Under the pieces are notes generated by a model. The model did not search any database, was not told the DNA's origin, and saw only the letters and a list, made by a program, of their open reading frames with translations. This document shows, piece by piece, positions 1-22,438 of a DNA stretch of 26,491 bases. The stretch covers positions 1 through 26,491 of the forward strand of contig CBFFRP010000618.1 in NCBI GenBank assembly GCA_965644295.1, read 5' to 3'. This DNA comes from Paraphysomonas bandaiensis. Its lineage: Eukaryota > Protista > Chrysophyceae. Position numbers and translations under genes: made by a program. The first letter of the stretch is position 1, and each line of letters opens with the position of its first letter.

Positions 1-3000
1 ACTCTGGGATGAATGCTCTCGAATGGGGTGGTTATATAAATGCTGCGTGAAAATTATAAAATCTATTCGTATTACACTGGGCTGATTGCACTTTCCTATA
101 CCACAATTCATATGACACCCTTTTCAAGACAAAATTATATGTGGAGAGTTTATACATCATGACGGGTATTTCAGACTATTACAGATTATGTGTTTGAATA
201 CATTTCTCCCTAACCAATGCGATCCAACGTATATATATCATAACTGCTCATCGCTCACAACATATTAGCTAGTGATCCCTAATTCTGAAATGATCTCCGT
301 CACAGCGTTTATTACCTCCTCACGAATTCCCACACGAATAGTAGCTAAGTAGGCTTTCAACAACTCCGTCCTACGAAGCCGCTGGGACTCCTCATAGTCC
401 GCCCGACGGCTAAATACATTAGGTCTACGATTATTGTATCTACAATTAGCAGTGTGTCGGTGGGCATCGTCGCCACAGTCGTGTAGACAGTATCCACAGA
501 AACCACAGTTGCAATTCGGACAATAAAGAGCTAGACAATGATCGTAGTCCAAGCTATCTGGAGTGAACAGCCACGCACATCTCGGACATCTGAGGGACAA
601 AATACAATTCCTAATGTAGTTCCCGTGAGTTTGTATCTCTCTGTCCTTCTCAGATAAGGCAGCGAGGCGGGCCTTCTCCAGCCGCTGAGCCTCTTCGTAT
701 TCGCACCTTTCTCGCCAAGCAACAAGCTCACGCTCACTGCGTTGATACAAACGGTGAACCTCTTCTGTTAACAGTCGTACCACTTTATGGGAATCAAAGG
801 GACCCACATTACATCCGTGAGAATGGTAGGGACACATGATTCGGAACTCGCCACCGTAATCTGTTCGTTCTTCCCAAACCTCGTTAAACTCAGCGGCTCT
901 CATGTTAGGCCAAGGCTTCTGCAGCTCTGTGCTGTTAGCTACTTGCCTGAACTCCCTCAAAATATCTCCTTTGTTGCCTCGAAGGTAAAGGTCTCGTTGC
1001 CCAGATATGTCCCAAATGTGAACTAGTCGACGTCGACCTCTCTCTGACGTGGCCTCAACTTTGACATAAGCGTTAAGACAGCCTTCACAAGTAAAGTGCC
1101 GATCATCTCCTTTGCACTGTAGCCCCTGACACATATCTACCTCTTCATCACACAAACAACATACTCGCATGCGAGCTTGTTGTTCCTTCTCCTGTCTCTC
1201 CCGCTCCTGCGTTATCTCCCGCTCCTGACAAACGATTCTTTCCCGGAGGGTTTGAATATCATTGGCTAAATCTTGTATGGCGAAGAAAGACTTCTGTAGT
1301 GCATCTCGGGAGGAAAGTCGTTCCTCCGGGTTTTGACACAGAATCTCCCTAAGACGGTTCCTCAAATCATTGAGTTCTCCATCACACTCAGGAATCCTGT
1401 GCACTAGAAATTTATCCATACGGTCCCGATTACACTCGAGGCCGAAGATGTGAAGTACACACACACCAAAGGAGTACATATCGGAAGCATAAGACGGAGC
1501 ATCACCAATGAATATCTCAGGGGCCATAAAATCATGAGACCCTCTCATTTTCCCGCCCAAAGTAGACTGGTCTCGACTCAAGGAGTCGATAGAAATATCA
1601 AAATCCGTTAACATAGCGGTTCCTCTGTCCGAAATAAGGATATTGTCTGGTTTCACATCACAGTGTACCACATTATTGCCGTGCAAATGAGCCAACCCAT
1701 TCAGCACATCGTTGCATAATAGACGCTTGGACAATATGCTTAACCCATGTTCTTGTCTCTCCAGGTACAGCGCTAAGTTTCCGTTTACGTAGAAAGGCAT
1801 TTCTATATACGCTTTACCCTTCTCAAGGAATACAGCAGTGATGTCCGCTATGTACGGACTTTGACAATGGGTAGCTAATATGCGAGCTTCCCGCCAGAAG
1901 CTTTTCTGCTGGTCCTCATTGCTGCATGAAAAAGCTTTCAAAAATACGTTCCTCTTAGCAAAGCAACCCCTCATAACCATGTTTCGGCTGTTGCTCTCAA
2001 CTATTTCCAAGTCAGAGTAATCATGAATCGAACGGTCAATTATCAGTAACCCCTTAGCTATGTCAGGCAAATCTTTCGGGTCAAAACCAATCCCAGGAAG
2101 CAAGATTGGCATCTCGGGAAAATGAGTCAAAGCTATTCGAGAGAGAGCAGCTCGCTCTTTGCACAGTGCGTTACGCTTGAACTGAAGCTCTACTCTGGCA
2201 TTATTCAGATCTTCTCCGAGCTGTTGTTGTCTCGCTCTGTCACAATTATCACCCTTAAGTTCCTGTATTTTAATAGCATGCTCACACTCCGCTATATGTA
2301 TCTTAGCATTTCTAATATCGTCCAATAGGCCGGAGAAGATTTGTCCTTTGGGAGGACCATCAACCCACACCTCCATTTCCTTGAGCTGGCTTCGTATTCT
2401 GGCCCTTTGTTGCACAATTTCGGAAGCTTTATGACACCAGTATGAGGTAAACCGCGCGACTGCTACACATGCTTCCCTGGTATCTCTTCTTAAACCTGGG
2501 TAAAAACGCATTGGGTTCTGCCAGTGATCCCTCTCAACACGAAGACACTCATCCAATTCCTTCGAACAAACTTCCAGATTATGCATACTCATGCTATTTT
2601 CATCAACTAACATCTCCCCAACACATCCCAAACATTTATGAAATGCCGCAAGCGCTCTCTCTGACTCCTCAGCGGGGGAGCGCGAGCACTCACCCACCCA
2701 TTCTCCCACCTTATCTTCGAAATCCGACAGAAGCGTCATCAGCTCAGTAGACGATATATGACGGGTTTCTCCAGTGCATTCTTCAATCACCTCATTTCCT
2801 GACCATCTGCACCCATCGTAGACTTGCTTCAAAACCTCTAACCACTTTTCCACGGGAGCTGCGAGGGCTGTCCGCATTACAGATACCAGTTTACGCCGAA
2901 CACTATCGCGCTCACCCTGAAGCCCTTGTAGATATTCCATATCAACATCCTTACTTTCTACATGACTACGGATGGACTCTTGTAGGGACAAAAGCTTCCG

Positions 3001-3290
3001 CTCCAATTCTGCGAAGACACTGTCCGAACCATCTACTGACTCCACTGCCTCCATACAGGGAGCAGTTAACCACGAGTCTTTGCTTTCAAATGCCGACAAA
3101 AGGCCCATCACAGAGTCGCGTAGATCACCATCAGCAATGAAGGACACTAACTTCTCGCCACTAGAGATTATATCTGGCCTGCGCAAACTCCTCACTTCAA
3201 GAACTTTCGAATGCACAACAGAGACATAGGAAGCACATCGTCGAGCAGCCTGCTCATAACAACGATACCAATGATATCAAACATAACATA
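1..3290. repeat. Left arm of an inverted segmental duplication (partner ~14540-17828)
   Basis: Position 1 corresponds to 17828 (ACTCTGGGAT vs ATCCCAGAGT). The 264-nt 3' flank differs by about four substitutions and one short indel by eye. The two 983-aa ORFs align end to end. Homology runs to the window edge, so the arm may be longer. Confidence 0.95.
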
Positions 3291-5364
3291 TAACGGCATC
3301 GCCATAACACACATACCTCTGCAGCAGCAGAGGCTTCTTCCTGTCTCTGCCTCTCAGCCTATACAATAATACACATACAACATAATTGAAAACAAAACAT
3401 ACACAACACCTATATACTACACCAACCATACCAATACTATCAAACATAACATATAACTACATCACCATAACACACATACCTCTGCCTCTTCCCATCTCTG
3501 CCTCTCAGCCTATACAATAATACACATACAACTTAATTGAAAACAAAACATACACAACACTTATATACTACACCTACCATACCAATACTATCAAACACAA
3601 CATACAACTACATCACCATAACACACATACCTCTGCAGTAGCAGATTTCTCTTCCTGTCTCTGCCTCTCAGCCTATACAATAATACACATACAACATAAT
3701 TGAAAACGAAACATACACAACACCTATATACTACACAAACCATACCAATACTATCAAACACAACATACAACTACATCACCATAACACACATACCTCTGCC
3801 TCTTCCCATCTCTGCCTCTCAGCCTATACAATAATACACATACAACTTAATTGAAGCCAAAACATACACAACACCTATATACTACACCTACCATACCAAT
3901 ACTATCAAACACAACATACAACTATATCACGATAACACACATACCTCTGCAGCAGCAGATTCCTCTTCCTGTCTCTGCCTCTCAGCCTATACAATACACA
4001 TATGATTCCAGTAAGTTGTATCTGTAGTTCTGCGATTGCTTCGAAGGATTCATACTAACATGTGCACTTCTGATGATTTGACGCATCGCATCACTTTTGG
4101 CCAAGTCAACAGGAGTCTTTCCCTTCTGAAAATATAACAAACATAAAAAGGGTGACACAATACGTATCACTTTTCACATAATGAGTCTGTGGGGGTATAT
4201 ATACATGTGTGTGTAGAGGGGTTACTTGCTTCGTCTCGTATATGAATATCTGCTCCTGCTCTTATAAGATACTCAGCTATATGTCTGTGACCATTACATA
4301 CAGCCCAGTGAAGAGCATTCCTACCAAACTATAAAACAAAATAATAATCACATATGAATATATATATGTGTGTTGAGGGGTTACCTACATTGTCTCGTAT
4401 ATGAATATCAGCTCCTTCACTTATGAGATACCCAGCTGTATCTCTCTGACCTTCAGAGGCAGCAAAGTGAAGAGCTGTCCAACCTAACTATAAAACAATA
4501 ATAACAATCAAATACGAGCCTTATCACTCTATGAATGTATATATACGTATGTACGTATGAATATGTATGTATATATGTTACTTACATTGCTTTGTTTACT
4601 CATATCTGCTCCTTCTCTAATAAGATACTCAGCTATGTCTCTGTGACCTTCAGATACAGCCGAGTGAAGAGCTGTTCTACCACACTATAAAACAAAAATA
4701 GTAATCACATATGAGCTTTCATAATACTGTATGTACATGTATATCTATATAGGTATACGCTACGTGTGTGTGTACATGTATATCTGTTTCTTATATGTCA
4801 AGTGTATATATACGTATGTGTTACTTACTTTGCTTCGTGTATGTATGTCTGCTCCTGCACTTATAAGATACTCAACCATACCTCTCTGACCTTCAGATAC
4901 AGCAGAGTGAAGAGCTGTATTACCATCCTATAAACAGTAATAGTAATCAAATATGAGCCCTTAGAGCACTCTATGTATGTATGTATGTGTATAGAGGGGT
5001 TACTTACATCGTCTCGTATAGTTATATCTGCCCCTACTCTTACAAGGTATTCAGATATGTCTCTGTGACCTTCAGAGGCAGCCCTATGAAGAGCTGTAAC
5101 ACCATCCTAATAAACAATATCAATGATCACATATGAGCCCTTATAGTATTGTATGTATGTATATCTATTCATATAAGTATGTATATGTATGTATGTGTGT
5201 GTATGTATATCTATTCCTATGTGTATGTATGTATGTATATGTATGTGTATGTGTGTGTGGTGTACCTTATCTTTTATATTGATGTTATCACCCCTCCCAA
5301 CACACTTCTTCACTTCATTGAAGTCACCCCTCGCAGCTGCTGTAATTATATCATCCATCTTCAT
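265..5364 (-). CDS. Gene A: ankyrin-repeat / coiled-coil / protein kinase / RBR-like E3 ligase protein, 13 exons, ~1276 aa
   Basis: Hand-spliced exons, all phase 0: 5364-5266 (MKMDDIITAAARGD...IKDK); 99-nt ankyrin exons 5106-5008, 4927-4829, 4684-4586, 4487-4389, 4328-4230; cap exon 4125-4060 (KGKTPVDLAK...SAH); micro-exons 3986-3945, 3823-3794, 3672-3631, 3509-3480, 3358-3317; terminal exon 3249-265, in frame with the 983-aa ORF. Motifs VFLK, HCDVKPDN, DFD, FMAPE, SDMYSFG, CCLC...HFTCEGC...CPYHSHGC, CPRC...HCLALYCPNC...FCGYC. All introns GT-AG except one GC-AG. Confidence 0.9.
3317..3989 (-). repeat. Tandem micro-exon/intron array in gene A with a 314-bp higher-order unit
   Basis: Exons alternate 42 nt (AERQRQEExSAxAE) and 30 nt (AERQRWEEAE). 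The four intervening introns are near-identical and each exactly 121 nt. Exon start spacing is 163/151/163/151. Confidence 0.93.
4126..4229 (-). other. Non-canonical GC-AG intron of gene A
   Basis: After the 99-nt exon 4328-4230 the minus strand reads GCAAGTAACCCCTCTA, where sister introns read GTAAGTAACCCCTCTA. The next GT (4225) would shift the frame. The acceptor TTTTCAG ends at 4126. Confidence 0.7.
4230..5106 (-). repeat. Ankyrin exon-intron tandem array of gene A (5 internal repeats)
   Basis: Five 99-nt exons encoding xGxxALHxAxxxGxRxxxxYLxxxGADxxxxxx, separated by related introns. Confidence 0.93.
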
Positions 5365-6108: not shown

Positions 6109-7802
6109 ATGACAACAGAAGAACCTGCATCAGATACACCACAAACAGATACTAATCCACAATTAACTTCACATGAAGATTCATTAATAAATAAAGATGA
6201 AGGGTTTAGTGAAGGGTTATGGCCACCTTACTGTAATCCATCATATGTGATGCCAGATGAAATAGATGTACATGTTGAAACTGTGACTGGTAATTACAGT
6301 TTTCCTGTTCAGATTATTAAAAAAACACAACGAAAATTATATTTTGGAGGGTATCGACATAAGGAGACGAGTGCAGTGTATCATCATGCAAGCACACAGA
6401 CTCCTACTGAGAAAAAGACAAATCAACGTGAAGTCAGCCATCTTAGAACCAGGGAGACTCAAACACATGATCATAAATCTGTTTCTGTGCAACCCTTGCG
6501 AGAACATGGTACTCAAATGCAAAGGATTGATTTATATCTTGATAACAAGAGGGATGTTGAGATCACTTCCAAGCCATATTTCACTGCGGAAGAGCTGTTT
6601 TACTTGAAGCGAGAGAAATGTGTTGAGATTCAGAGAGTATGGAGGGGCTATATGTCAAGGTGTCGAGCAATTAGACTGAAACAGAATATTGTTCTGGAAG
6701 AAGAGAGAGCCCTTGAAGCCAAGTGAGTAGATGATTATTGATATGCACTGTTACATCATATTGACTGAGAAGTAATATGTCCTGTAACTGCTAAGTGCTA
6801 CCTACCATCGACGTGATCTCTTCCATGCTTATCGTAATTTTTTTAATAGGGAACATAACGAGAAAACTCTCCAAGAACAAAAAATGCAAGAAATGCGTAA
6901 ACGCACTCACCCAACTACAAATGAAGACTTTGCTAGACTGTACAATGAGCTCGATGCGTGGAGGAAAGCGGAAGTTGCTAAAGTAAAGGTATGGATATGG
7001 TAACATGTTAGAGTTGTGCCGAATGACATGCGAGAGTTTACCGTTGTTATAGTGACATTGTAACATGAATTACAATAGTTATTATAGCAAAAGTTTTATA
7101 ATGCATTGATAGGCGAACACTACTCCTGGAGAGGAACGTCGTCGAGCTCTGGAGGCAATTTTGGCTGAGGAAACAGAAGCATTGCAAAATATACAACGCC
7201 TCAAGAATACTGCCCATCGGGCCACTGTTCAGGAGAAGACACAAAAGATGTTGGAACTGATGGCTCAGCCTAATAAGTGGGCGATGAGTGATGGAGACGT
7301 TGCCACCGTCCAGACACCAGCCTCAACGCGTGCAAAGGAACTGTTGGATTTGTACAATGCCTTGAACGCTCCATTAGTGGGAACCAACCAGCGATTGGAA
7401 ATTTTACTGAATGTCAAATGGACTGTGAAAGAATCGATGTCCTCTAATACTGGAGGAGGGCTATCAGTTACAATGAATTGCAATAAAGAAATTCTGGACC
7501 TTGTCGACAGAGAGGCAGATCTCCTTAACCGCGGCAGGTATGGTTGTGTGTATAGTTTGCTGTTACTCTCTGTGCGGACATATTATGTATATTGTATTTC
7601 TTATGATGAGCCTATTAACAGAGATATGACAATGTATTTGAGATATATCTAAGCTGTTTTGTTTAGACCATTCAAAAGCATGGAATCTTTGCGCAAAAGA
7701 ATTAGCAACTTGTTCCTTCAGTTTATTGAAAATCCTGCGTACAATCCTCGTGCTACAGAGTTTATTAACATACCTGTACCTCCCACTGGACAGACCACCT
7801 AA
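6109..7802 (+). CDS. IQUB: IQ and ubiquitin-like domain-containing protein (IQUB/FAP253 family, flagellar radial spoke), 4 exons, ~437 aa
   Basis: Exons 6109-6722, 6850-6988, 7113-7537 and 7667-7802 have compatible phases and GT-AG ends. Family motifs: YFGGYRHKETSAVYHHASTQT, RETQT, REHGTQM, KPYFTA, IQ motif IQRVWRGYMSR, RTHPTTNEDFARLYNELDAWR, LVDREADLLNRGR, LRKRISNLFLQFIENPAYNP. No clear ubiquitin-like domain at the N-terminus. Confidence 0.9.
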
Positions 7803-9442: not shown

Positions 9443-9949
9443 GGTGATGTTAGTACAGAAGTCGAGTTATATTAGAATGAATATATGAACATGTATGCAT
9501 GTATGTATGTATGTATGTATGTATGTATGTATGTATGTATGTATGTATGTATGTATGTATGTATGTATGTATGTATGTATGTATGTATGTATGTATGTAT
9601 GTATGTATGTATGTATGCATGTATGTATGTATGTATGTATGTATGTATGTATGTATGTATGTATGTATGTATGTATGTATGTATGTATGTATGTATGTAT
9701 GTATGTATGTATGTATGTATGTATGTATGTATGTATGTATGTATGTATGTATGTATGTATGTATGTATGTATGTATGTATGTATGTATGTATGTATGTAT
9801 GTATGTACAGTATCTTGGTGTAGTGGGTTCCTGTGGTGTCCAGATTTCAATGTCAGTCATTATTATCACAAAATAAACAAGTTCATAACACTATCATTAC
9901 TATCAACTTGTGGCCTGTCAGTTTCTTGTATCATCTAAGAGAGATTGAG
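9443..9949. promoter_or_regulatory. Probable bidirectional promoter of SOD1 and gene C
   Basis: Only 507 nt separate the divergent ATGs (9442 -, 9950 +), and 317 nt of that is microsatellite. Confidence 0.4.
9491..9807. repeat. (TATG)n microsatellite, ~79 units
   Basis: Near-perfect tetranucleotide run with only two T>C interruptions (9498, 9618). Confidence 0.98.
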
Positions 9950-12900
9950 ATGTTTAAAGCTGCTCGTGAGGGTAAAATCAGAGACGTGCAGAGGTGTATT
10001 AGGAGAGGTGTGAATATTAATGAAAAGGACCAGGTAAACCATACACACACATAGAATATATGTACCATAATGATACAGTGTTCTAAGGGCTCATATGTGA
10101 TTATTATAATTGTTTATAGGATGGTTATACAGCTCTTCACTCTGCTGTATCTGAAGGTCAGAGAGGTATGGTTGAGTATCTCATAAGAGCAGGAGCAGAC
10201 ATACATACACGAAGCAAAGTAAGTAACACATACATATACATACACATATAGATAGATAGTGTATTAAGGGCTCATATGTGATTATTATAATTGTTTTATA
10301 GGATGGTTGTACAGCTCTTCACTTGGCTGTATCTGAAGGTCAGAGAGACATAGCTGAATATCTTATAAAGGCAGGAGCAGATATTCATACACGAGCCAAT
10401 GTAAGTAAAATATATAAAAATATATGTACATACACATATATATAGATAGAGTGTTCTAAGGACCCATATGTGATTATTATAATTGTTTTGTAGGATGGTA
10501 ATACAGCTCTTCTTTTGGCTGTATCTGAAGGTCAGAGAGACATAGCTGAATATCTTATAAAGGCAGGAGCATATATTCATACACGAAACAATGTGAGTAA
10601 CCCCTCTATAAACATACATACATACATATATATATACAGTGTTATGAGGGCTCACATGTGATTATATATAGGATGGTGGTGTAGCTCTTCTCTTGGCTGT
10701 ATCTAAAGGTCACAGAGATATAGCTGAGTATCTGATAAGAGCAGGAGCAGATATAACTATACGAGACAGAGTAAGTAACCCCTCTACATCTATATACATA
10801 CATAACTACAGAGATGCAGTGTTATCTTGTATAGACTACAGGGCTCATGTGATTGTTTTTATTTTGTTTTATAGGATGGTAATACAGCTCTTCACGATGC
10901 TGTCTCTACAGGTCACAGAGATATAGCTGAGTATCTTATAAAGGCAGAAGCTGATATTAATGCACGGAACAGTGTAAGTAACCCCTCTACACATACATAC
11001 ATATGATACATACATATGTACATACACACATATTATATACATATAATCATATCGTGTTATAAGGGCTCATGTTTGATTATAATATATGTTTCACAGGATG
11101 GTTGGACAGCTCTTCTCTTGGCTGTCTCTCAAGGTCACAGAGATATAGCTGAGTATTTGATAAGAGAAGGAGCAAATATTCATATTCGAGACGATGTAAG
11201 TAACCCCACTAGATACATATACATACACATATATACATACATAACTATAGAGATACAGTAGACGCATATGTGACTACTGTTATTGTGTTTTATAGGATGG
11301 TAACACAGCACTTCACAAGGCTGTCTCTGCAGGTCACAGAGATATAGCTGAGTATCTTATAAAGGCAGGAGCAGATATTAATGCGCGGAACAATGTGAGT
11401 AACCCCTCTATACACATACATACATATGAACATATATATAACAATATCGTGTTATAAGGGCTCATATTTGATTATGATATATATTTTATAGGATGGTTGG
11501 ACAGCACTTCACAAGGCTGTCTCTGCAGGTCACAGAGATATAGCTGAGTATCTTACAAGAGAAGGAGCACATATTAAGATACCAAACAATGTAAACAATT
11601 CCGCCCCTCTATACACATATACATACATTTATAGATACATACAGTAAGGACTCATATGTAATTATTATTGTGTTTTATAGGATGGTAATACAGCTCTTCA
11701 CGATGCTGTCTCTGAAGGTAAGGGAGATATAGCTGAGTATCTCATAAGAGCAGGAGCAGATATGAATAAACAAAACAATGTAAGTATCCTGTCTACACAC
11801 ATATGTATACTTATATACATATAATCAAAATGTGTTTCTAAGGCTCAAATGTTATTATTATGATTCTTTTGTAGGATGGTTGGACAGCACTTCACAAGGC
11901 TGTATCTAAAGGTCACAGAGATATAGCTGAGTATCTTATAAGAGAAGGGGCAGATATTCAAATACGAGACAATGTATGTATCACATGAAAACACACATAT
12001 GTACATATATACATATACATATAATCATATCGTGTTGTAAGGCTCAAATCTTATTATTATAATTCCTTTGTAGGATGGTTGGACAGCTCTTCTCTTGGCT
12101 ATATCTAAAAGTCACGGAGATATAGCTGAGTATCTTATAAGAGAAGGAGCAGATATGAGTAAACAAAGCAATGTAAGTATCACGTCTACACACGTATGTG
12201 TGCATACATAGATATATATATAATCATAATGTGTTTCTAAGGCTCATATGTGATCCTTATAATTGTATTATAGGATGGTTGGACAGCTCTTCTCTTGGCT
12301 GTATCTAAAGGTCACAGAGATATAGCTGAGTATCTTATAAGAGCAGGAGCTGATATTCATACACGAGACGAGGTAAGTAACCCTTTTATACATACATATA
12401 TATATATATATATATAAACATATCGTGTTAGAGGAGCTCATATGTGATTATTATAATTGTATTATAGGATGGTTGGACAGCTCTTCCCTTGGCTGTCTCT
12501 GAAGGTCACGTAGATATAGCTGAGGATCTTATAAGAGAAGGATCAGATATGAATGCACAAAACAATGTAAGTATCACATGAAAACACATATATATATAGA
12601 TATACTTATGTACATACATACATATTTACACCTACATATTTACATATAATCATATCGTGTTATAAGGGCTCATATGTGCTTACTATTATTGTATTACAGG
12701 ATGGTTGGACAGCTCTTCACTGGGCTGTCTCTCAAGGTCACAGAGATATAGCTGAGTATCTTATAAGAGAAGGAGCAGATATTCATATACGAGAAAGTGT
12801 AAGTACCCCTCTATGGCTACCTACTTATACATATATATATACATATATATATACATATAATCATATCGTGTTATAAGGGCTCATATGTGATTATAATATA

Positions 12901-15900
12901 TGTTTCATAGGATGGTTGGACAGCTCTTCTCTTGGCTGTATCTGAAGGTCACGAAGATATAGCTGAGTATCTTATAAAAGAAGGAGCAGATATTCATATA
13001 CCAAACAATGTAAGTAACCCTTCTTTAGATACATATAAACGCATACATATATACATATGATAATATGGTGTTATAAGGGCTCATATGTGATCCTTATAAT
13101 TGTATTATAGGATGGTTGGACAGCTCTTCTCTTGGCTGTATCTAAAGGTCACAGAGATATAGCTGAGTATCTTATAAGAGAAGGAGCAGATATACATACA
13201 CGAAACAATGTAAATAACCCCTCTACACATACATACGCATATATATATATATATATGTGAATGTATCGTGTTATAAGGGCTCATGTTTGATTATAATATA
13301 TGCTTCACAGGATGGTTGGACAGCTCTTCACTTGGCTGTCTCTGCAGGTCACAGAGATATAGCTGAGTATCTTATAAGAGAAGGAGCAGATATGAGTAAA
13401 CAAAGCAATGTTAGTAACCCTTCTATAGATTCATACCTACTTACATACATATATATATACATATATATTGTTATAAGAGGGTTCATATGTGATTATTATA
13501 ACTGTATTATAGGATGGTTGGACAGCTCTTCACAAGGCTGTCACTAAAGGTCACAGAGATATAGCTGCGTATCTCATAAGAGAAGGAGTAGATATTGAGA
13601 TAAGAAACAATGTAAATAACCCCGCCCCTCTACGCACATATATAGATATGCAAACATACATACATATACATGCACACACGTATAAGGGATCATTTTATAA
13701 ATTTTGATATATATATACCCCACAGACCCATTATGTGAAAAGACGATATGAACATGCGGCGACTGACTGTGCCACTTCTTTTTGTGATGTTAATAGTTTT
13801 TTTCGCAGAAGTGCAAGACTCCTGTTGACTTGGCAAATGATGAAGCGATGCGTGAGCTCATCATAAATGCACATGTTAGTATATATCCTGTACCCTTCAT
13901 CGCATTGTAGAGCTAGAAATATATCATATGTATAATTGTACAGGCAGAAAGGCAGAGACAGGAAGAGAACGCTGCTGCAGAGGTATGTGTGGCTGTGGTA
14001 TGATATGTTGCATAGTATTGCTACGGTTGGTGTGTACAGGTGTCGTGTTTTTGTTTTTGTTTTAATTGAGTGTGTGTGTATTATTGTATAGTCTGAGAGG
14101 CAGAAACAGGAAGAGGAAGCTGCTGCTGCAGAGGTATGTGTGTTACGGTGATATAGTTATATGGTATGATATGTGTGATTTCATTGGTGTTGTTAGTGTA
14201 ATATATAGATGTCCTGTTTGCTTTGGTTTTTATTGAGTTTGTTTGTATTGTATAGGCTGAGAGGCTGAAGCAGGAAGTGGAAGCTGCTGCTGCAGTGGTA
14301 TGTGTGTCATGAGTTATGTAACAGAAACATATATAAGCTTGCAGTTTATATATTATGACAACCTAACATATAGATGTTTGAAGTATACATGTGTCACACA
14401 CGAGTATATGTGTGAAGTATTCATATAGTACATATATATATGCAGTATGTATGTAACGTGTACATATAATTCGTACATTTATGTGCATGCAGTACGTATA
14501 TAATGCAGATATATATATGATGTAGTTATATATGGTATGATATTTTTGATATCATTGATGCGGTTGTTATGAGCAGGCTGCTCGACGATGTGCTTCCGAT
14601 GTCTCCGTTGTGCATTCGAAAGTTCTTGAAGTGAGGAGTTTGCGCAAGCCGGATTCAACCTCTCGTGACAAGAAGTTAATGTTCTTCATTGCTGATGATG
14701 ATCTACGCGACTCTGTAATGGGCCTTTTGTCGGCATTTGAAAGCAAAGACTCATGGTTAACAGCTCCCTGTATAGAGGCAGTGGAGTCAGTAGATGGTTC
14801 GGATAGTGTCTTCGCAGAATTGGAGCGGAAGCTTCTGTCCTTACAAGAGTCTATCCGCTGTCATGTAGAAAGTAAGGATGTTGATATGGAGTATCTACAA
14901 GGACTTCAGGGTGAGCGCGATAGTGTTCGGCGAGACCTAGTGTCTGTAATGCGGACAATCCTCGCAGCTCCCGTGGAAAAGTGGTTAGAGGTTCTGAAGC
15001 AAGTCTACGATGGGTGCAGATGGTCAGGAAATGAGGTGATTGAAGCTGTAGAATGCATTGGAGAAACCCGTCATATATCGTCTACTGAGCTGATGACGCT
15101 TCTGTCGGATTTCGAAGATAAGATGGGAGAATGGGTGGGTGAGTGCTCGCGCTCCCCCGCTGAGGAGACAGAGAGAGCACTTGCGGCATTTCATAAATGT
15201 TTGGGATGTGTTGGGGAGATGTTAGTTGATGAAAATAGCATGAGTATGCATAATCTGGAAGTTTGTTCGAAGGAATTGGATGAGTGTCTTCGTATTGAGA
15301 GGGATCACTGGCAGTACCCTATGCGTTTTTACCCAGATATAAGGCGAGATACCAGGGAAGCATGTGTAGCAGTCGCGCGGTTTACCACATACTGGTGTCA
15401 TAAAGCTTCCGAAATTGTGCAACAAAGGGCCAGAATACGTAACCAGCTCGAGGAAATGGAGGTTTGGGTTGATGGTCCTCCCAAAGGAGAAATCTTCTCG
15501 GGCCTATTGGACGATATTAGAAATGCTCAGAAGCGTATTGCGCAGTGCAAGTTTGCTATTGAAATTCAGGAACTTGAGGGTGATAAATGTGACAGAACGA
15601 GACAACAACAACTCGAGGAAGATATGAAAAATGCGAAAGTAGATCTTCAGCTCAAGCGTAACGCACTGTGCAAAGAGCGAGCTGCTCTCTCTCGAATAGC
15701 TTTGACTCATTTTCCCGAGATGCCAATCTTGTGTCCTGGGATTGGTTTTGACCCGAAAGATTTGCCTGACATAGCTAAGGGGTTACTGATAATTGACCGT
15801 TCGATTGGTGATTACTCTGATTTAGTCGAGAGCAACAGCCGAAACTTGGTTATGAGGGGTTGCTTTGCTAAGAGGAACGTATTTTTGAAAGCTTTTTCAT

Positions 15901-17561
15901 GCAGCAATGAGGACCAACAGAAAAGCTTCTGGCGGGAAGCTCGCATATTAGCTACCCATTGTCAAAGTCCGTACATAGCGGACATCACTGCTGTATTCCT
16001 TGAGAAGGGTAAAGCGTATATAGAAATGCCTTTCTACATAAATGGAAACTTAGCGCTGTACCTGGAGAGACAAAAGCATGGGTTAAGCATATTGTCCAAG
16101 CGTCTATTATGCAACGATGTGCTGAATGGGTTGGCTCATTTGCACGGCAATAATGTGGTACACTGTGATGTGAAACCAGACAATATCCTTATTTCGGATA
16201 GAGGAACCGCTATGTTAACGGATTTTGATATTTCTATCGACTCCTTGAGTCGAGACCAGTCTACTTTGGGCGGGAAAATGAGAGGGTCTCATGATTTTAT
16301 GGCTCCTGAGATATTCATTGGTAATTCTCCATCTTATGCTTCCGATATGTACTCCTTTGGTGTGTGTGTACTTCACATCTTTGGCCTCGAGTGTAATCGG
16401 GGCAGTATGGATAAATTTCTAGTGCACAAGATTCCTAAGTGTGATGGAGAACTCAATGATTTGAGGAACCGACTTAGGGAGGTTCTGTGTCAAAATCCGG
16501 AGGAACGACTTTCTTCCCGAGATGCACTACAGAAGTCTTTCTTCGCCATACAAGATTTAGCCAATGATATTCAAACCCTCCGGGAAAGAATCGTTTGTCA
16601 GGAGCGGGAGATAGCGCAGGAGCGGGAGAGACTGGAGAAGGAACAACAAGCTCGCATGCGAGTATGTTGTTTGTGTGATGAAGAGGTAGATATGTGTCAG
16701 GGGTTGCAGTGCAAAGGAGAGGCTCGGCACTTTACTTGTGAAAGCTGTCTTAACGCTTATGTCAAAGTTGAGGCCACGTCAGAGAGGGGCCGACGTCGAC
16801 TAGTTCACATTTGGGACATATCTGGGCAACGAGACCTTTACCTTCGAGGCAACAAAGGAGATATTTTGAGGGAGTTCAGGCAAGTAGCTAACAGCACAGA
16901 GTTACAGAAGCCTTGGCCTAACATGAGAGCCCCTGAGTTTAACGAGGTTTGGGAAGAACGAACAGATTACGGTGGCGAGTTCCGGATCATGTGTCCCTAC
17001 CATTCTCACGGATGTAATGTGGGTCCCTTTGATTCCCATAAAGTGGTACGACTGTTAACAGAAGAGGTTCACCGTTTATATCAACGCAGTGAGCGTGAGC
17101 TTGTTGCTTGGCGAGAAATTTGCCATTACGAAGAGGCTCAGCGGCTGGAGAAGATCCGCCTGGCTGCCTTATCTGAGAAGGACAGAGAGATACAAACTCA
17201 CGGGAACTACATTAGGAATTGTATTTTGTCCCTCAGATGTCCGAGATGTGCGTGGCTGTTCACTCCAGATAGCTTAGACTACGGCCATTGTCTAGCTCTT
17301 TATTGTCCGAATTGCAACTGTGGTTTCTGTGGATACTGCCTACACGACTGTGGCGACGATGCCCACCAACACACTGCCAATTGTAGATACAATAATCGTA
17401 GACCTAATGTATTTAGCCGTCGGGCGGACTATGAGGAGTCCCAGCGGCTTCGTAGGACGGAGTTGTTGAAAGCATACTTAGCTACTATTCGTGTGGGAAT
17501 TCGTGAGGAGGTAATAAACGCTGTGACGGAGATCATTTCAGAATTAGGGATCACTATCTAA
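9950..17561 (+). CDS. Gene C: ankyrin-repeat / coiled-coil / protein kinase / RBR-like E3 ligase protein, 24 exons, ~1679 aa (paralog of gene A)
   Basis: Exon 1 is 9950-10033 (MFKAAREGK...EKDQ; first in-frame ATG, an upstream exon is not excluded). Eighteen 99-nt exons start at 10120, 10302, 10494, 10672, 10875, 11097, 11296, 11492, 11681, 11875, 12074, 12274, 12468, 12700, 12911, 13111, 13311 and 13513. Then cap exon 13809-13874, micro-exons 13944-13982, 14092-14133, 14256-14297, and terminal exon 14577-17561. All are GT-AG, phase 0 and stop-free. Kinase ~15810-16545, RING1 16665-17015, Rcat 17238-17384. Confidence 0.92.
10120..13611 (+). repeat. Ankyrin exon-intron tandem array of gene C (18 internal repeats, ~180-230-bp period)
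   Basis: Each unit is AG|GATGGTnnnACAGCTCTT...GGTCACAGAGATATAGCTGAGTATCTTATAAGAG...|GT plus an intron with conserved ends and a TA/CA microsatellite core. Confidence 0.96.
13944..14297 (+). repeat. Three helical-linker micro-exons of gene C
   Basis: AERQRQEENAAAE (39 nt), SERQKQEEEAAAAE (42 nt), AERLKQEVEAAAAV (42 nt), each flanked by AG and GTATGTGT. Their introns are more diverged from each other than those in gene A. Confidence 0.88.
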
Positions 17562-18477: not shown

Positions 18478-21400
18478 TTAATCTGATTCATGGTCTGACA
18501 CTTCTTGTTCTTCATCCTCGAAATCACCTTCTGTTAAACGGGTTGCATTTATACGCACCTGCAGTAGCATTTTTCCTGTTGACGTAACGTCGTGCTTCTG
18601 CTCCAAAGTACGGTGCATTGAGCGCTCCTCTCGGTTCGCCAGGTAAAGATCTGATGCGTTGCGTTCGGCTACATGACCGGTCGTACCCTCCTCTAAGCGC
18701 ACAAGGTTTAATATATTCACCTGGCAGTACTAGTTTAACATCGAAACATAGAGTACACAGCACACTAGAACAACTGCCGTCACTAAATCACTACATATCC
18801 ATGCATGTACTCACTCTGTTGTACAGTTAACCGTAGCAAAATAATCGAATGTCATTATTACAACGTTGTACACTCGTTACTGCCTGCTATTAATTAAAAC
18901 TCTTCTTAAACTAATTCTTCCATATAACACACTTGCTAGCACGAACAAGTACATATGGTAACAATTGCACGTCATGGTACTCATACATCTCCGGCATCTC
19001 CGTTTGGTACAGCAGCGTACTCAATACGATTAACATGACTACGCACATTTCGTAGCTCCATGGTGATGTTATTGATATCACCAAACAATTGCTCCCACCG
19101 CCGGTTCTTCAAATTTTCGCTTCGCAGTTTCGATTTAAGCATTTCATCACTGACAACTGTCAAAATGACACCAACAATGATAATCAGCCATTCAAACCAG
19201 CGCGGTGCTGTCAAGTGAAATATGTCTTGAACCACGGGAACAAATACAACAATGAAAGTACAAGACATACTGAAAAGAATGGCCTTGATCATTGCAGTGT
19301 TACGGAAAGGATCATTGCGGATGGCCAAACTGAAAGATCTAGCAGTCAGAGGTCGCAAACACTCTGCAAAAGTAATAATAAGGAACACCATTGTCCGGGC
19401 AATCTTTAGTCCATCTTTTACACAGTCACCTGACTCCACTTCCACCCAAGTTCCACTTGACGTCAACTGATTACACTGTGTGATGAGATCGCCATCATCA
19501 TTGTACATATTGTCGATAAGCACCACACCAATATTCCACCACAAGCCCATGAAGAATGTAAGCAACATAAAAACGACAAGTACAGTGGCGTGTCCAAGAA
19601 TGCCGACAGCGATCACTCCGCTGAGAATTCTGGAATTTTTCTTTCTAGGAGGTTGTCGCATGACGTCTCCTTCTGGATCCTCAATACTGAGTGCAACGGC
19701 CGGCATTCCGTCAGTGATCAAATTGATAAACAGAATCTGCAGCGGTTCCAACGGATTCGGCATGCCGATAAGAAGAGACAATAAGATCACAAGAACTTGA
19801 GACCAGTTAGTGCCAATAAAATACATGACAAATTTGCGCAGATTGCTGTATATAGTTCGAACCCATTTCAATAGCACCAACAATCGAAGAAAATTTATCG
19901 TCAGTTAAAATCATATCAGAGGCTGCTTTGGCTACTTCCGAGCCTGCTATACCCATCGCAATACCAATATTTGCTTGCCTCAAGGCAGGGGCATCATTTA
20001 CCCCATCTCCTGTCATTCCGCATACTTTGCCTTGTCGCTGAAAAGATTTCACAATTTGAATTTTGTCCTCTGGTCGTGCCCGAGCAAAGACAAATGTGTG
20101 CCAGCGTTATTTCATCGATTTCCCGAGCACTCAAATAGTCACCATTGGGTCGGAGTACAGAGCAGTCGACGGCACACTCAGTTTCATCCATCGTAGGCCC
20201 AACTATGTTAATCATCTTAGCGATTGCTACAGCAGTTTTTAAGTAATCTCCGGTGATCATAACAGTCCGAACACCACCTTCCTTTGCCGTCAAAACAGCT
20301 TTCTTACCCCTGGTCGAGGGGGGGGTCCATCATACCTATTAGGCCTGAGAATACCATATTGGACACGAGCACATCTGAGCTTATCTTCAGTGGGGACAGA
20401 CTCGTCATCCTCATCAACAGCTATAGTCGTAGAACGACGATAGCAGGCCGCAAGAACACGTAAACCAAGATCAGATAGGCGGTCACATTCCTTGACGATA
20501 TCGCTCCGCATGTCAGCAGTGAGTTCAGTGACAACGGTGACCAGACCCATCATGCTCGTCACGAATCACGTATTTACACTTATTTAATAGGACAAGTGGG
20601 GCCCCTTTGGACATTACAACCAAGTTGTTTTGGTCATTTGCTTTGTCTGAAGATGAGTTCGGGGCAGGTATAAAATATTTGAACCGCTCTTCTTGGAGTC
20701 TATGCACTGAGGCCATCATTTTGAACTTGGAGCCAAATGGAACAACACACTCCTGAGGGTTTGACTTTCTGTACTCTCCCGTGTGGCGATACCGAATTTT
20801 TGGGAGGCTACAACCAGGGCCGCTTCGGTGGATGTACCAATAGGAACCCACTTGCCTTCATTGTAACGTAGACCGAGCTGGCATATAGCACGAGTCACCA
20901 TTGTGGCAGCCAGTGCAACAATCGACTGAGAATGAGGACCGTTTGTCACTTGGTTATCTTTTGAGTCCATCACATGGCCTTGCGTCGGATCATATCCACT
21001 CCCACTCAATGCTGTAGAGTCTCTCGTACGTCCACATCTGGGTGGCGGTCATTTTCCCAGTGTAAGGGTTCCAGTCTTATCACTGCATACAACAGAAGCA
21101 GACCCCAGAGTCTCGACAGCGGGCAAACGGCGAATCAAAACATTTCGCTCTGACACAGCGTGTGTTCCTAGTGCCAAGCACATGACAACAACAAGTGGAA
21201 GTCCCTCAGGAATCGCAGACACAGCCATACTAACCGCAAGCATCAAACTCTGGAGCCAAGGAGGATTGTCTTCATTATTCGGGTCTCTAAAGTTACGTAA
21301 AATACCGATAATTATCACCAACACAGCACCAGTAATCGCAAAGCCAGTCATAATGAGACCCAAATGATGGATTTCATCTTGTAAAGGAGTTCGCTTCGGC

Positions 21401-22438
21401 TGTACACTCGACATGAACTTCTTTATAGACGTGCAGCAGTTGGTGGCATTAACGACATACGACACAGAGAAGCTCGAAGTCTTCTTCTCAGTCTTTATGA
21501 TCATCCTCTTCTTCATCAGACTCATACTCTTCCGATTCAGAACTTCGGTTTTCTTGAATCTCACTCATTGAATCGATGTATACGAGATTGCATTTCTTGT
21601 GGTACTTTATTCTCACTGCTATCATTCTCAGGTCCTTGATTAAGTAAAGTAGCAATTGATCCCAACACTGTGTATTCATACCCGTTAAAAGGACAACACC
21701 CGTAAGTTTTCCATCCACCATACTAGTTGATCCATATACCATATTCACTGCAGTTAATTTATTTTCATCTTCTTTCAAGTGTTGTACGAGCAGATTTCTT
21801 TACTTCCGCTCGATTCCACCCGTTAAGATCATTTCATTCACTTTCACATGATGTGATTCAATTATTCGTATATCAGCAGTGAATCCAAATCACCCGTTGG
21901 CGATAAAACAATAATATCACCTGGTACAATATCACATGTTGATATCATTTCTAATTGTCCATTACGATATACATGTGAATGTGGATCAGCTAAGGATGCT
22001 AATGCTTCTAATGCATTCCCAGATGAACATTCAGTATATGTTGCTAGCAGATGCGCTGTACTTCAAAATAATAATCAAATACAGCAATACCTTCAACTAA
22101 ATTCACCAACAAGTAATTGATACAATAGCAGCAATCATTAATATAATAATCACAATATTAACAAACTGTGATAAAAAATAATAACCATAGTGGAATACGT
22201 TTAGGGTTTGGTTAACTCATTTGTACCATATAGATGTAATCTACGTATTACTTCATCTGGAAGTTAATCCATTAGATATATTAGTACTTAATGCACCAAC
22301 CACATCTTCATATGGTATATTAGAATTAGCGTATTGGTTTAATTCTTCAGATGAAATCACTTCATTACTTCGGTGATGTTTTTTACGTAATAATTCACAT
22401 GCTTTTTCTTCATCAAAAGATGCCATTTCAACACTCAT
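18478..22438 (-). CDS. Type II P-type cation-transporting ATPase (ATP4/ENA-like Na+ pump or SERCA/PMR1-like), frame broken by many indels
   Basis: Motifs occur in the correct order across nine ORF pieces: GLTS..YGTNEL, DIVPGDI, corrupted [43 protein letters not shown], corrupted [49 protein letters not shown]. First ATG at 22438. The ORF stop is at 18981, but GAT|GTATGA (18986) and CCAG|GTG (18720) allow an in-phase last exon 18720-18478. Confidence 0.85.

Follow-up and report, generated by a model that had tools for sequence, protein, structure and literature searches.

A repeat that is copied many times over within one gene may come to vary at some of its codons and not at others, and the question is then whether the variable codons are selected for change or are only those that the protein fold leaves free. 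This question is raised by a window of 26,491 nucleotides, the whole stretch of DNA analysed here, from the chrysophyte Paraphysomonas bandaiensis (contig CBFFRP010000618.1 of assembly GCA_965644295.1). The DNA is eukaryotic and has short introns of the GT-AG type, and its forward strand carries a gene, called gene A here, in which an array of ankyrin (ANK) exons precedes a protein kinase exon. An earlier note, made from the sequence alone, proposed that variation in this array is concentrated at codons of the ankyrin binding surface (3, 8, 12 and 29-33), as in a natural library of designed ankyrin repeat proteins (DARPins), and ascribed it to diversifying selection on ligand specificity. Diversifying selection is well supported at the beta-turn and inner-helix codons, which are codons 3, 8 and 12 in gene A and also codons 1 and 11 in the wider family; the variation at the loop codons 29-33 is compatible with near-neutral change and reassortment of a few recurrent cassettes.

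Ankyrin exons and their pattern of variation

Between positions 10120 and 13611 lie 18 open segments of 99 nt, each holding one ankyrin repeat in phase 0, with AG on its 5′ side and a GT donor on its 3′ side; the donor reads GTAAGT in 11 of the 18. The earlier note had placed 23 repeats in this interval; that total is reached only with the five repeats of gene B, an inverted paralog on the minus strand (5106-4230). The repeats are named here A01 to A18 and B1 to B5. The spliced model of gene A contains 24 exons, all in phase 0 and with AG/GT borders, and gives an open reading frame (ORF) of 1679 aa without stops; in-frame stops are present in 21 of the 23 modelled introns. The last exon encodes an ORF of 983 aa, in which Pfam places a Pkinase domain at aa 424-645 (E 5e-30). 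Pfam found protein kinase families only in this exon, with neither NACHT nor NB-ARC, and no Pfam match to the approximately 420 aa before the kinase domain or to the Cys/His-rich tail.

All 23 repeats match Pfam PF00023 of the clan Ank, with a best E of 1.5e-12. The first repeat covers positions 1-33 of the 33 positions of the model, as does A16, with a score of 39.9 bits (cut-off 21.1). The exons also align without gaps to the internal repeats of DARPin chains. Because of these two matches, exon numbering can be equated with canonical ankyrin numbering, in which G2, T4, P5, H7, G13 and G25 are the key residues (PMC9611651). In gene A, G2 is kept in 18 of 18 repeats and T4, G13 and G25 in 17 of 18 each; P5 is replaced by Ala in every repeat, so that the TPLH motif reads TALH. 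Codon 7 encodes His in 10 repeats, Leu in seven and Pro in one. The seven Leu repeats, which lie within 10494-13209, read Leu-Leu at codons 7-8, and Leu at position 7 is found in only 2 of 172 repeats elsewhere in the family; this loss of the conserved His7, specific to gene A, might alter hydrogen bonding between repeats.

Ranked by amino-acid entropy, the variable codons of gene A are 29, 12, 30, 32, 8, 33, 3, 7 and 31, highest first. Codons 14, 15, 23 and 24 vary moderately, and the remaining codons are fixed or have a single deviant. The residues that the earlier note listed at codons 3, 8 and 12 all occur, gene B alone accounting for V or R at codon 3, for R or F at codon 8 and for N at codon 12, and every one of its loop pentapeptides (HTRSK, TIRDR, NARNS, KIPNN, SKQSN, HIRES and EIRNN) was recovered; variation at codons 7 (H/L/P), 14, 15, 23 and 24 was absent from its list. 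At codon 12, the third base is invariant and the first two bases have a nucleotide diversity (pi) of 0.62 and 0.37, which argues against a local mutation hotspot.

The framework was described in the earlier note as almost fixed even at synonymous sites, and this is borne out: four-fold framework sites of gene A have a pi of 0.134, and the aligned intron columns one of 0.333 (P=1e-4). This silent fixity is not explained by codon bias, since repeat exons and kinase exons differ in codon usage: Thr is ACA in 181 of 194 cases in repeat exons versus 11 of 58 in kinase exons, and Tyr is TAT in 169 of 194 cases in repeat exons, while TAC is preferred in kinase exons.

The six positions randomised in DARPins correspond to exon positions 1, 3, 11, 12, 31 and 33, and are located on the concave surface of those proteins (PMC8229355). 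The nine most variable codons of gene A include four of these six (P=0.034); the overlap claimed for these sites is incomplete here, with position 1 being Asp in 18 of 18 repeats and position 11 Ser in 17 of 18. Position 8 is outside the DARPin set. By helix periodicity, positions 8, 11 and 12 of the inner helix fall within 100 degrees of one another; the conserved L6 and V10 are roughly on the other side of the helix, and A9 is about 100 degrees sideways. Since position 8 is thereby grouped with 11 and 12, it probably faces the same groove. One 33-aa repeat folded alone gave helices at residues 2-11 and 15-31 with a break around G13 (pLDDT 81); this fold carries no information on stacking, and was discarded as uninformative about the concave face, the loop being over-extended into the second helix.

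The exon and intron unit of approximately 195 bp recurs at no fewer than 174 places of the 62.6-Mb assembly, with approximately 80% DNA identity. Twenty fetched loci plus the window provided a family of at least 195 repeat exons of the 99-nt, phase-0 type, in about 20 arrays. In the repeats outside the window, variability is highest at positions 8, 3, 1, 12, 11 and 33, and here the overlap is fuller: five DARPin positions, all but position 31, belong to this group of six (P=1.5e-4).

Selection at the variable codons

Over all pairs of gene A repeats, counting by the Nei-Gojobori method (NG86) gave a dN/dS ratio (omega) of 1.09 overall, 2.5 at the DARPin positions taken a priori, 3.0 at the set of codons listed in the earlier note and 0.53 in the framework. 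The site models M1a and M2a were compared in our own implementation on an IQ-TREE codon tree, with topologies fixed under recombination. M2a was preferred for gene A (2dlnL 17.7, P=1.4e-4, omega2 2.9), with posteriors above 0.9 at codons 3, 7, 8, 12, 29, 30 and 32, and for genes A and B together (2dlnL 32.3, P=1e-7), with posteriors above 0.9 at codons 3 and 8.

The exon was also divided in two, each part with its own tree. Codons 1-16 of gene A again favoured M2a (2dlnL 13.4, P=0.0012), with posteriors above 0.9 at codons 3, 7, 8, 12, 14 and 15. Codons 17-33 did not (2dlnL 2.6, P=0.27), and no site in this part was significant by the likelihood-ratio test (LRT). Thus an omega above 1 with recombination allowed for, which the earlier note had expected at all its codons, was obtained at codons 3, 8 and 12, where the pair counts agree, and was not obtained at codons 29-33. 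At codon 7 the case for selection is doubtful, since the seven Leu repeats just reflect the spread of one variant.

Introns provided a second reference. The first two positions of codons 3, 8 and 12 in gene A are 1.5 times as diverse as the aligned intron columns (P=0.018), and codons 29-33 show no significant excess (1.15 times, P=0.20). Four other, independent array sets of the family also reject M1a, with LRT P values from 5e-7 to 0.005. Selection was found at codon 8 in each of these four sets and at codon 3 in three of them; at codon 12 it was found in two, and a third gave a support of 0.83.

For the family as a whole, the intron rate was bounded rather than measured, since its estimate is too low when the short AT-rich flanks are aligned with gaps and too high in an ungapped anchored comparison. 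In 90 disjoint pairs of repeats with nearest introns, per-site omega at codons 1, 3, 8 and 12 is 2.9-3.6, and against the most conservative intron rate it is still 1.7-2.2 (P<=4e-6). Picking pairs by intron similarity biases intron divergence downward; therefore both bounds are reported, and pairs chosen only by the similarity of their adjoining units were also used. In 42 such neighbour-defined pairs, silent divergence (pS) is 0.094 and intron divergence 0.076-0.138; nonsynonymous divergence (pN) is 0.254 at codons 1, 3, 8, 11 and 12, 0.145 at codons 29-33 and 0.074 elsewhere. Pairs defined by strict synteny numbered only four. Distances computed for the 18-nt downstream flank are meaningless. 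Family-wide, codons 1, 3, 8, 11 and 12 change at about 2.7 times the silent rate. Codons 29-33 have a pN/pS of about 1.5 relative to silent sites and about 1.05 relative to the upper intron estimate.

Array remodelling and explanations of the variable groove

The exons of gene A are recombinant mosaics. A11 and A17 are identical in their 3′ halves and differ in their 5′ halves; A12 and A16 are identical in their 5′ halves and differ in their 3′ halves; and the paralog repeat B3 carries the 3′ cassette that A11 and A17 have in common. All four gametes are present in 75 of 153 pairs of informative sites, with a minimum number of recombination events (Rm) of at least 8 within 99 nt. The distances of the 5′ and 3′ halves are weakly correlated (Mantel r 0.23), and the contrast between repeats of the same and of different arrays is weak (silent differences 0.100 versus 0.137).

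The explanation towards which we lean, with some reserve, is that of a cassette-exon array whose groove codons are selected for variable target recognition and which is fused to a kinase effector. The unit of exon plus intron would have undergone tandem duplication as well as exchange, both from repeat to repeat and from locus to locus, and this copying and exchange would keep the framework of the fold, silent sites included, nearly uniform. The tip of the beta-turn (codon 3; in the family also 1) and one face of the inner helix (codons 8 and 12; in the family also 11) would change faster than silent and intronic sites, and because the groove codons outpace both, selection would favour changes of side chain in the concave groove by which the partner is held. 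The loop codons 29-33 would vary at about the neutral rate and be reassorted in the form of a few recurrent cassettes. Such an array would most likely serve as a variable target-recognition arm, bringing different partners to an effector part made of kinase and zinc finger, and gene A would belong to a repertoire of cassette arrays found throughout the genome. Ligand recognition as the selected trait is suggested by the positions of the sites in the ankyrin fold.

Several points weigh against this explanation. The comparisons are between paralogous repeats, in which ongoing diversification is not separable from old differences that are now conserved. The mosaic structure of the exons inflates the site-model tests, and the silent sites of gene A are less diverse than its introns, so that ratios to dS overstate omega. 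The excess of codons 3, 8 and 12 over introns is just 1.5-fold in gene A, and codons 29-33, half of the set in the earlier note, have no significant excess over neutrality. The residue alphabet is small and has been spread by duplication (codon 3 is W in 11 repeats and N in four; codons 7-8 are LL in seven and HK in four), and therefore the independent events are fewer than the counts suggest. In addition, the concave-face location of the variable sites is predicted from homology and helix geometry, and the splicing and expression of gene A are read from its sequence.

The most serious alternative, though in our view an unlikely one, is a static surface specific to each repeat. The groove would have diverged when the array was built, each repeat would contact a different part of one long partner or of several fixed ones and would now be conserved, and omega above 1 between repeats would record past functional divergence, as in canonical ankyrins. 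The exclusively paralogous comparisons, with no orthologs found, are in its favour, as are the small alphabet at the variable sites of gene A and the presence of the 24-repeat ankyrin-1/ankyrin-2 chain 4rlv among the PDB matches. A01 and B2, which differ by just 3 nt, further show that some repeats are stably kept. However, this is the sole repeat of gene B with a full-length counterpart in gene A, and the two arrays have 18 and 5 repeats, although the kinase exons of the two genes differ by a dS of only 0.093 (dN 0.033); remodelling of the arrays has therefore far outpaced change in the remainder of the gene. Recent duplicate units with a silent divergence of approximately 0.09 already differ at 25% of the nonsynonymous sites of the hypervariable codons, and the same sites recur in six array sets.

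Ordinary ankyrin conservation is a less probable alternative. It supposes purifying selection on the framework, an unconstrained surface with omega near 1, and repeats that are alike as recent copies. The overall omega of the repeats is indeed near 1, codons 29-33 behave neutrally, and the positions picked for DARPin randomisation were those not conserved in natural ankyrins (PMC9611651). On the other hand, codons 3, 8 and 12 exceed both the silent and the intron rates, which neutral sites cannot do, and M2a is preferred over M1a in six of six data sets.

We consider it very improbable that omega is raised by a depressed dS, through selection on the exon sequence (e.g., splicing enhancers) or conversion centred on exons: the lower silent diversity of gene A (0.134 versus 0.333) and a framework fixed against the usual codon usage of the genome speak for it, but in the recent neighbour-defined pairs pS lies within the intron range while pN of the hypervariable codons is above both, and the silent sites of the interleaved codons 4, 5, 6 and 9 are the most conserved of all, which makes conversion tracts that skip just the variable codons implausible.

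A bolder extension of the cassette-exon explanation would see the genome-wide pool of 99-nt phase-0 cassettes as a repertoire generator. Frequent germline or somatic exon exchange, or combinatorial skipping, would produce binders fused to kinase, PARP and other effectors, a protist analogue of anticipatory immune receptors on a natural DARPin-like scaffold. We give this extension very little credence, even less than the depressed-dS account.

The cassette-exon explanation has counterparts in known systems. In fungi, the NOD-like receptors (NLRs) carry highly similar ANK, TPR and WD repeats, whose number is polymorphic and whose concave face includes sites under positive selection (Dyrka et al. 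2014, PMC4986451), for which the WD40 repeats provided a precedent (Paoletti et al. 2007, PMC1805685). As in the ANK repeats of fungal NLRs, the repeats are nearly identical and in tandem, a small number of inner-helix and beta-hairpin codons (3, 8 and 12; in the family also 1 and 11) are under positive selection, repeats recombine within and between loci, and the repeat domain is paired with varied effectors. Unlike here, the fungal repeats are not organized one per exon and are C-terminal to NACHT or NB-ARC; their number is known to be polymorphic between isolates, while here the difference is between the paralogs A and B. The array also stays below the fungal criterion of at least 85% identity over at least 100 aa, with 64-91% identity to the first repeat and a mean column identity of 78%.

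In the brown alga Ectocarpus, the exons of ROCO (LRR) and NB-ARC-TPR genes are shuffled, diversifying selection acts on these genes, and most of the difference between recent paralogs falls in the repeat domain (Zambounis et al. 2012, PMC3341825). The locus resembles them in having one symmetric exon per repeat (18 of 99 nt in phase 0 in gene A; 195 in the family), recent duplicates that are nearly identical but for a remodelled repeat domain of different repeat number, repeat exons under diversifying selection and related cassettes spread over many loci. It differs in its ANK rather than LRR or TPR repeats, in its effector, a kinase with a Cys/His-rich tail, and in a gene model predicted from the sequence rather than from expressed sequence tags (ESTs). 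Ectocarpus also has relic and inverted repeat exons in introns; none were found in the array introns on both strands of the window and 20 loci, each array lying on one strand, in a search that did not extend to degenerate relics without an open frame.

With the DARPin libraries the array shares a fixed consensus framework between N- and C-terminal caps and diversity at the beta-turn and inner helix. Unlike in DARPins, position 8, a fixed Leu there, is the most variable position of the family, the loop positions 29, 30 and 32 vary, the library positions 1 and 11 are near-invariant in gene A, and TPLH is changed to TALH. The locus joins the themes of fungal NLRs and of Ectocarpus on the ankyrin fold, with a kinase effector and without a NOD domain or intronic relics. 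A literature search for ankyrin genes with one exon per repeat found nothing.

If the cassette-exon explanation is correct, a marine protist would own a large family of ankyrin binders, similar to a DARPin library, made from shuffled single-repeat exons fused to signalling enzymes, and both hypervariable repeats and the shuffling of one-repeat exons would then be known from a new lineage and on the ankyrin fold. The members would be candidate recognition or conflict genes, e.g., against viruses or parasites. They would also provide natural data on where in the ankyrin repeat diversification is tolerated and rewarded; one such site is position 8, constant in DARPin designs.

Features, paralog and genomic surroundings

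Table 1. Exons of genes A and B in the window, with the residues at codons 3, 8 and 12 and at the loop codons 29-33 of each gene A repeat
Feature	Position	Strand	Codons 3/8/12	Codons 29-33	Remarks
N-terminal capping exon, gene A	9950-10033	+			28 aa, ATG start; donor GTAAAC; from the spliced ORF model
ANK exon A01	10120-10218	+	Y/S/E	HTRSK	
ANK exon A02	10302-10400	+	C/L/E	HTRAN	
ANK exon A03	10494-10592	+	N/L/E	HTRNN	codon 7 = L
ANK exon A04	10672-10770	+	G/L/K	TIRDR	
ANK exon A05	10875-10973	+	N/D/T	NARNS	
ANK exon A06	11097-11195	+	W/L/Q	HIRDD	
ANK exon A07	11296-11394	+	N/K/A	NARNN	
ANK exon A08	11492-11590	+	W/K/A	KIPNN	
ANK exon A09	11681-11779	+	N/D/E	NKQNN	
ANK exon A10	11875-11973	+	W/K/K	QIRDN	
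ANK exon A11	12074-12172	+	W/L/K	SKQSN	
ANK exon A12	12274-12372	+	W/L/K	HTRDE	
ANK exon A13	12468-12566	+	W/L/E	NAQNN	codon 7 = P, codon 20 = D
ANK exon A14	12700-12798	+	W/W/Q	HIRES	
ANK exon A15	12911-13009	+	W/L/E	HIPNN	
ANK exon A16	13111-13209	+	W/L/K	HTRNN	Pfam Ank E 3.9e-10
ANK exon A17	13311-13409	+	W/L/A	SKQSN	
ANK exon A18	13513-13611	+	W/K/K	EIRNN	
C-terminal capping exon, gene A	13809-13874	+			22 aa, KCKTPVDLAN...
Three Glu/Ala/Gln-rich mini-exons, array-to-kinase link	13944-13982, 14092-14133, 14256-14297	+			
Last exon, gene A	14577-17561	+			2985 nt, 983-aa ORF: ~420 aa, protein kinase domain, Cys/His-rich C-terminus
Five ANK exons, gene B	5106-5008, 4927-4829, 4684-4586, 4487-4389, 4328-4230	-			
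Kinase-containing last exon, gene B	265-3216	-			93% aa identity to gene A

Gene B occupies positions 265-5362 and has the plan of gene A with only five ANK exons. Its repeats 3-5 (4230-4684) have Cys, Leu or Phe instead of Asp as first residue, and the intron after its last ANK exon begins with GC, not GT; these features may reflect a GC-AG intron or the early decay of the shorter array. The Glu/Ala/Gln-rich mini-exons of 39-42 nt are tandemly repeated together with their introns, at 3260-3996 in gene B (minus strand) and at 13944-14297 in gene A, with periods of 151/314 bp and 86-94% matches in Tandem Repeats Finder (TRF). About six were counted by eye in gene B versus three in gene A, and therefore the length of this short, charged linker also varies between the paralogs.

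Kinase exons akin to that of gene A are present on four further contigs, with 83-100% identity, and a relative with 30% identity on a fifth. On one contig (C453 of genome G000, 18657-21278), the copy is 100% identical from residue 110 on and stops at the contig edge; it is probably an assembly duplicate or haplotig, and otherwise a very recent duplication. A word search with the 983-aa kinase exon found no close relative (the best match had 34% identity over 20% of the query), a metagenome scan with the same exon found no relative, and an Atlas search gave generic kinase clusters only. The metagenome scan with the repeat alignment yielded seven loci with 43-64% identity, which encode ordinary ankyrin proteins.

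Other arrays of the family adjoin a PARP catalytic domain (L036, contig C457, 985-1734, minus strand) and a different protein kinase (L039, contig C483, 4193-5500), which suggests that several kinds of effector have been joined to the ankyrin cassette array. Several arrays are flanked by Copia-type reverse-transcriptase fragments and by an SH3-like fragment of a retroviral polymerase (L024, 3-1025; L034, 416-1561; L030, 5458-5913).

In the window, an IQUB-like, cilium-associated gene (6109-7652, plus strand) sits between the inverted paralogs, and a P-type cation ATPase gene (18981-21564, minus strand) is the downstream neighbour of gene A. Some marine polyA metatranscriptomes contain 9-14% of the words of this stretch, and the sequencing runs X10-X12 contain about half. 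Directly 5′ of the gene A start codon lies an (ATGT)79 microsatellite (9491-9807, 98% pure); similar ATAC/TATG runs fill many introns of the family arrays, where they yield long spurious open frames reading YIHT.

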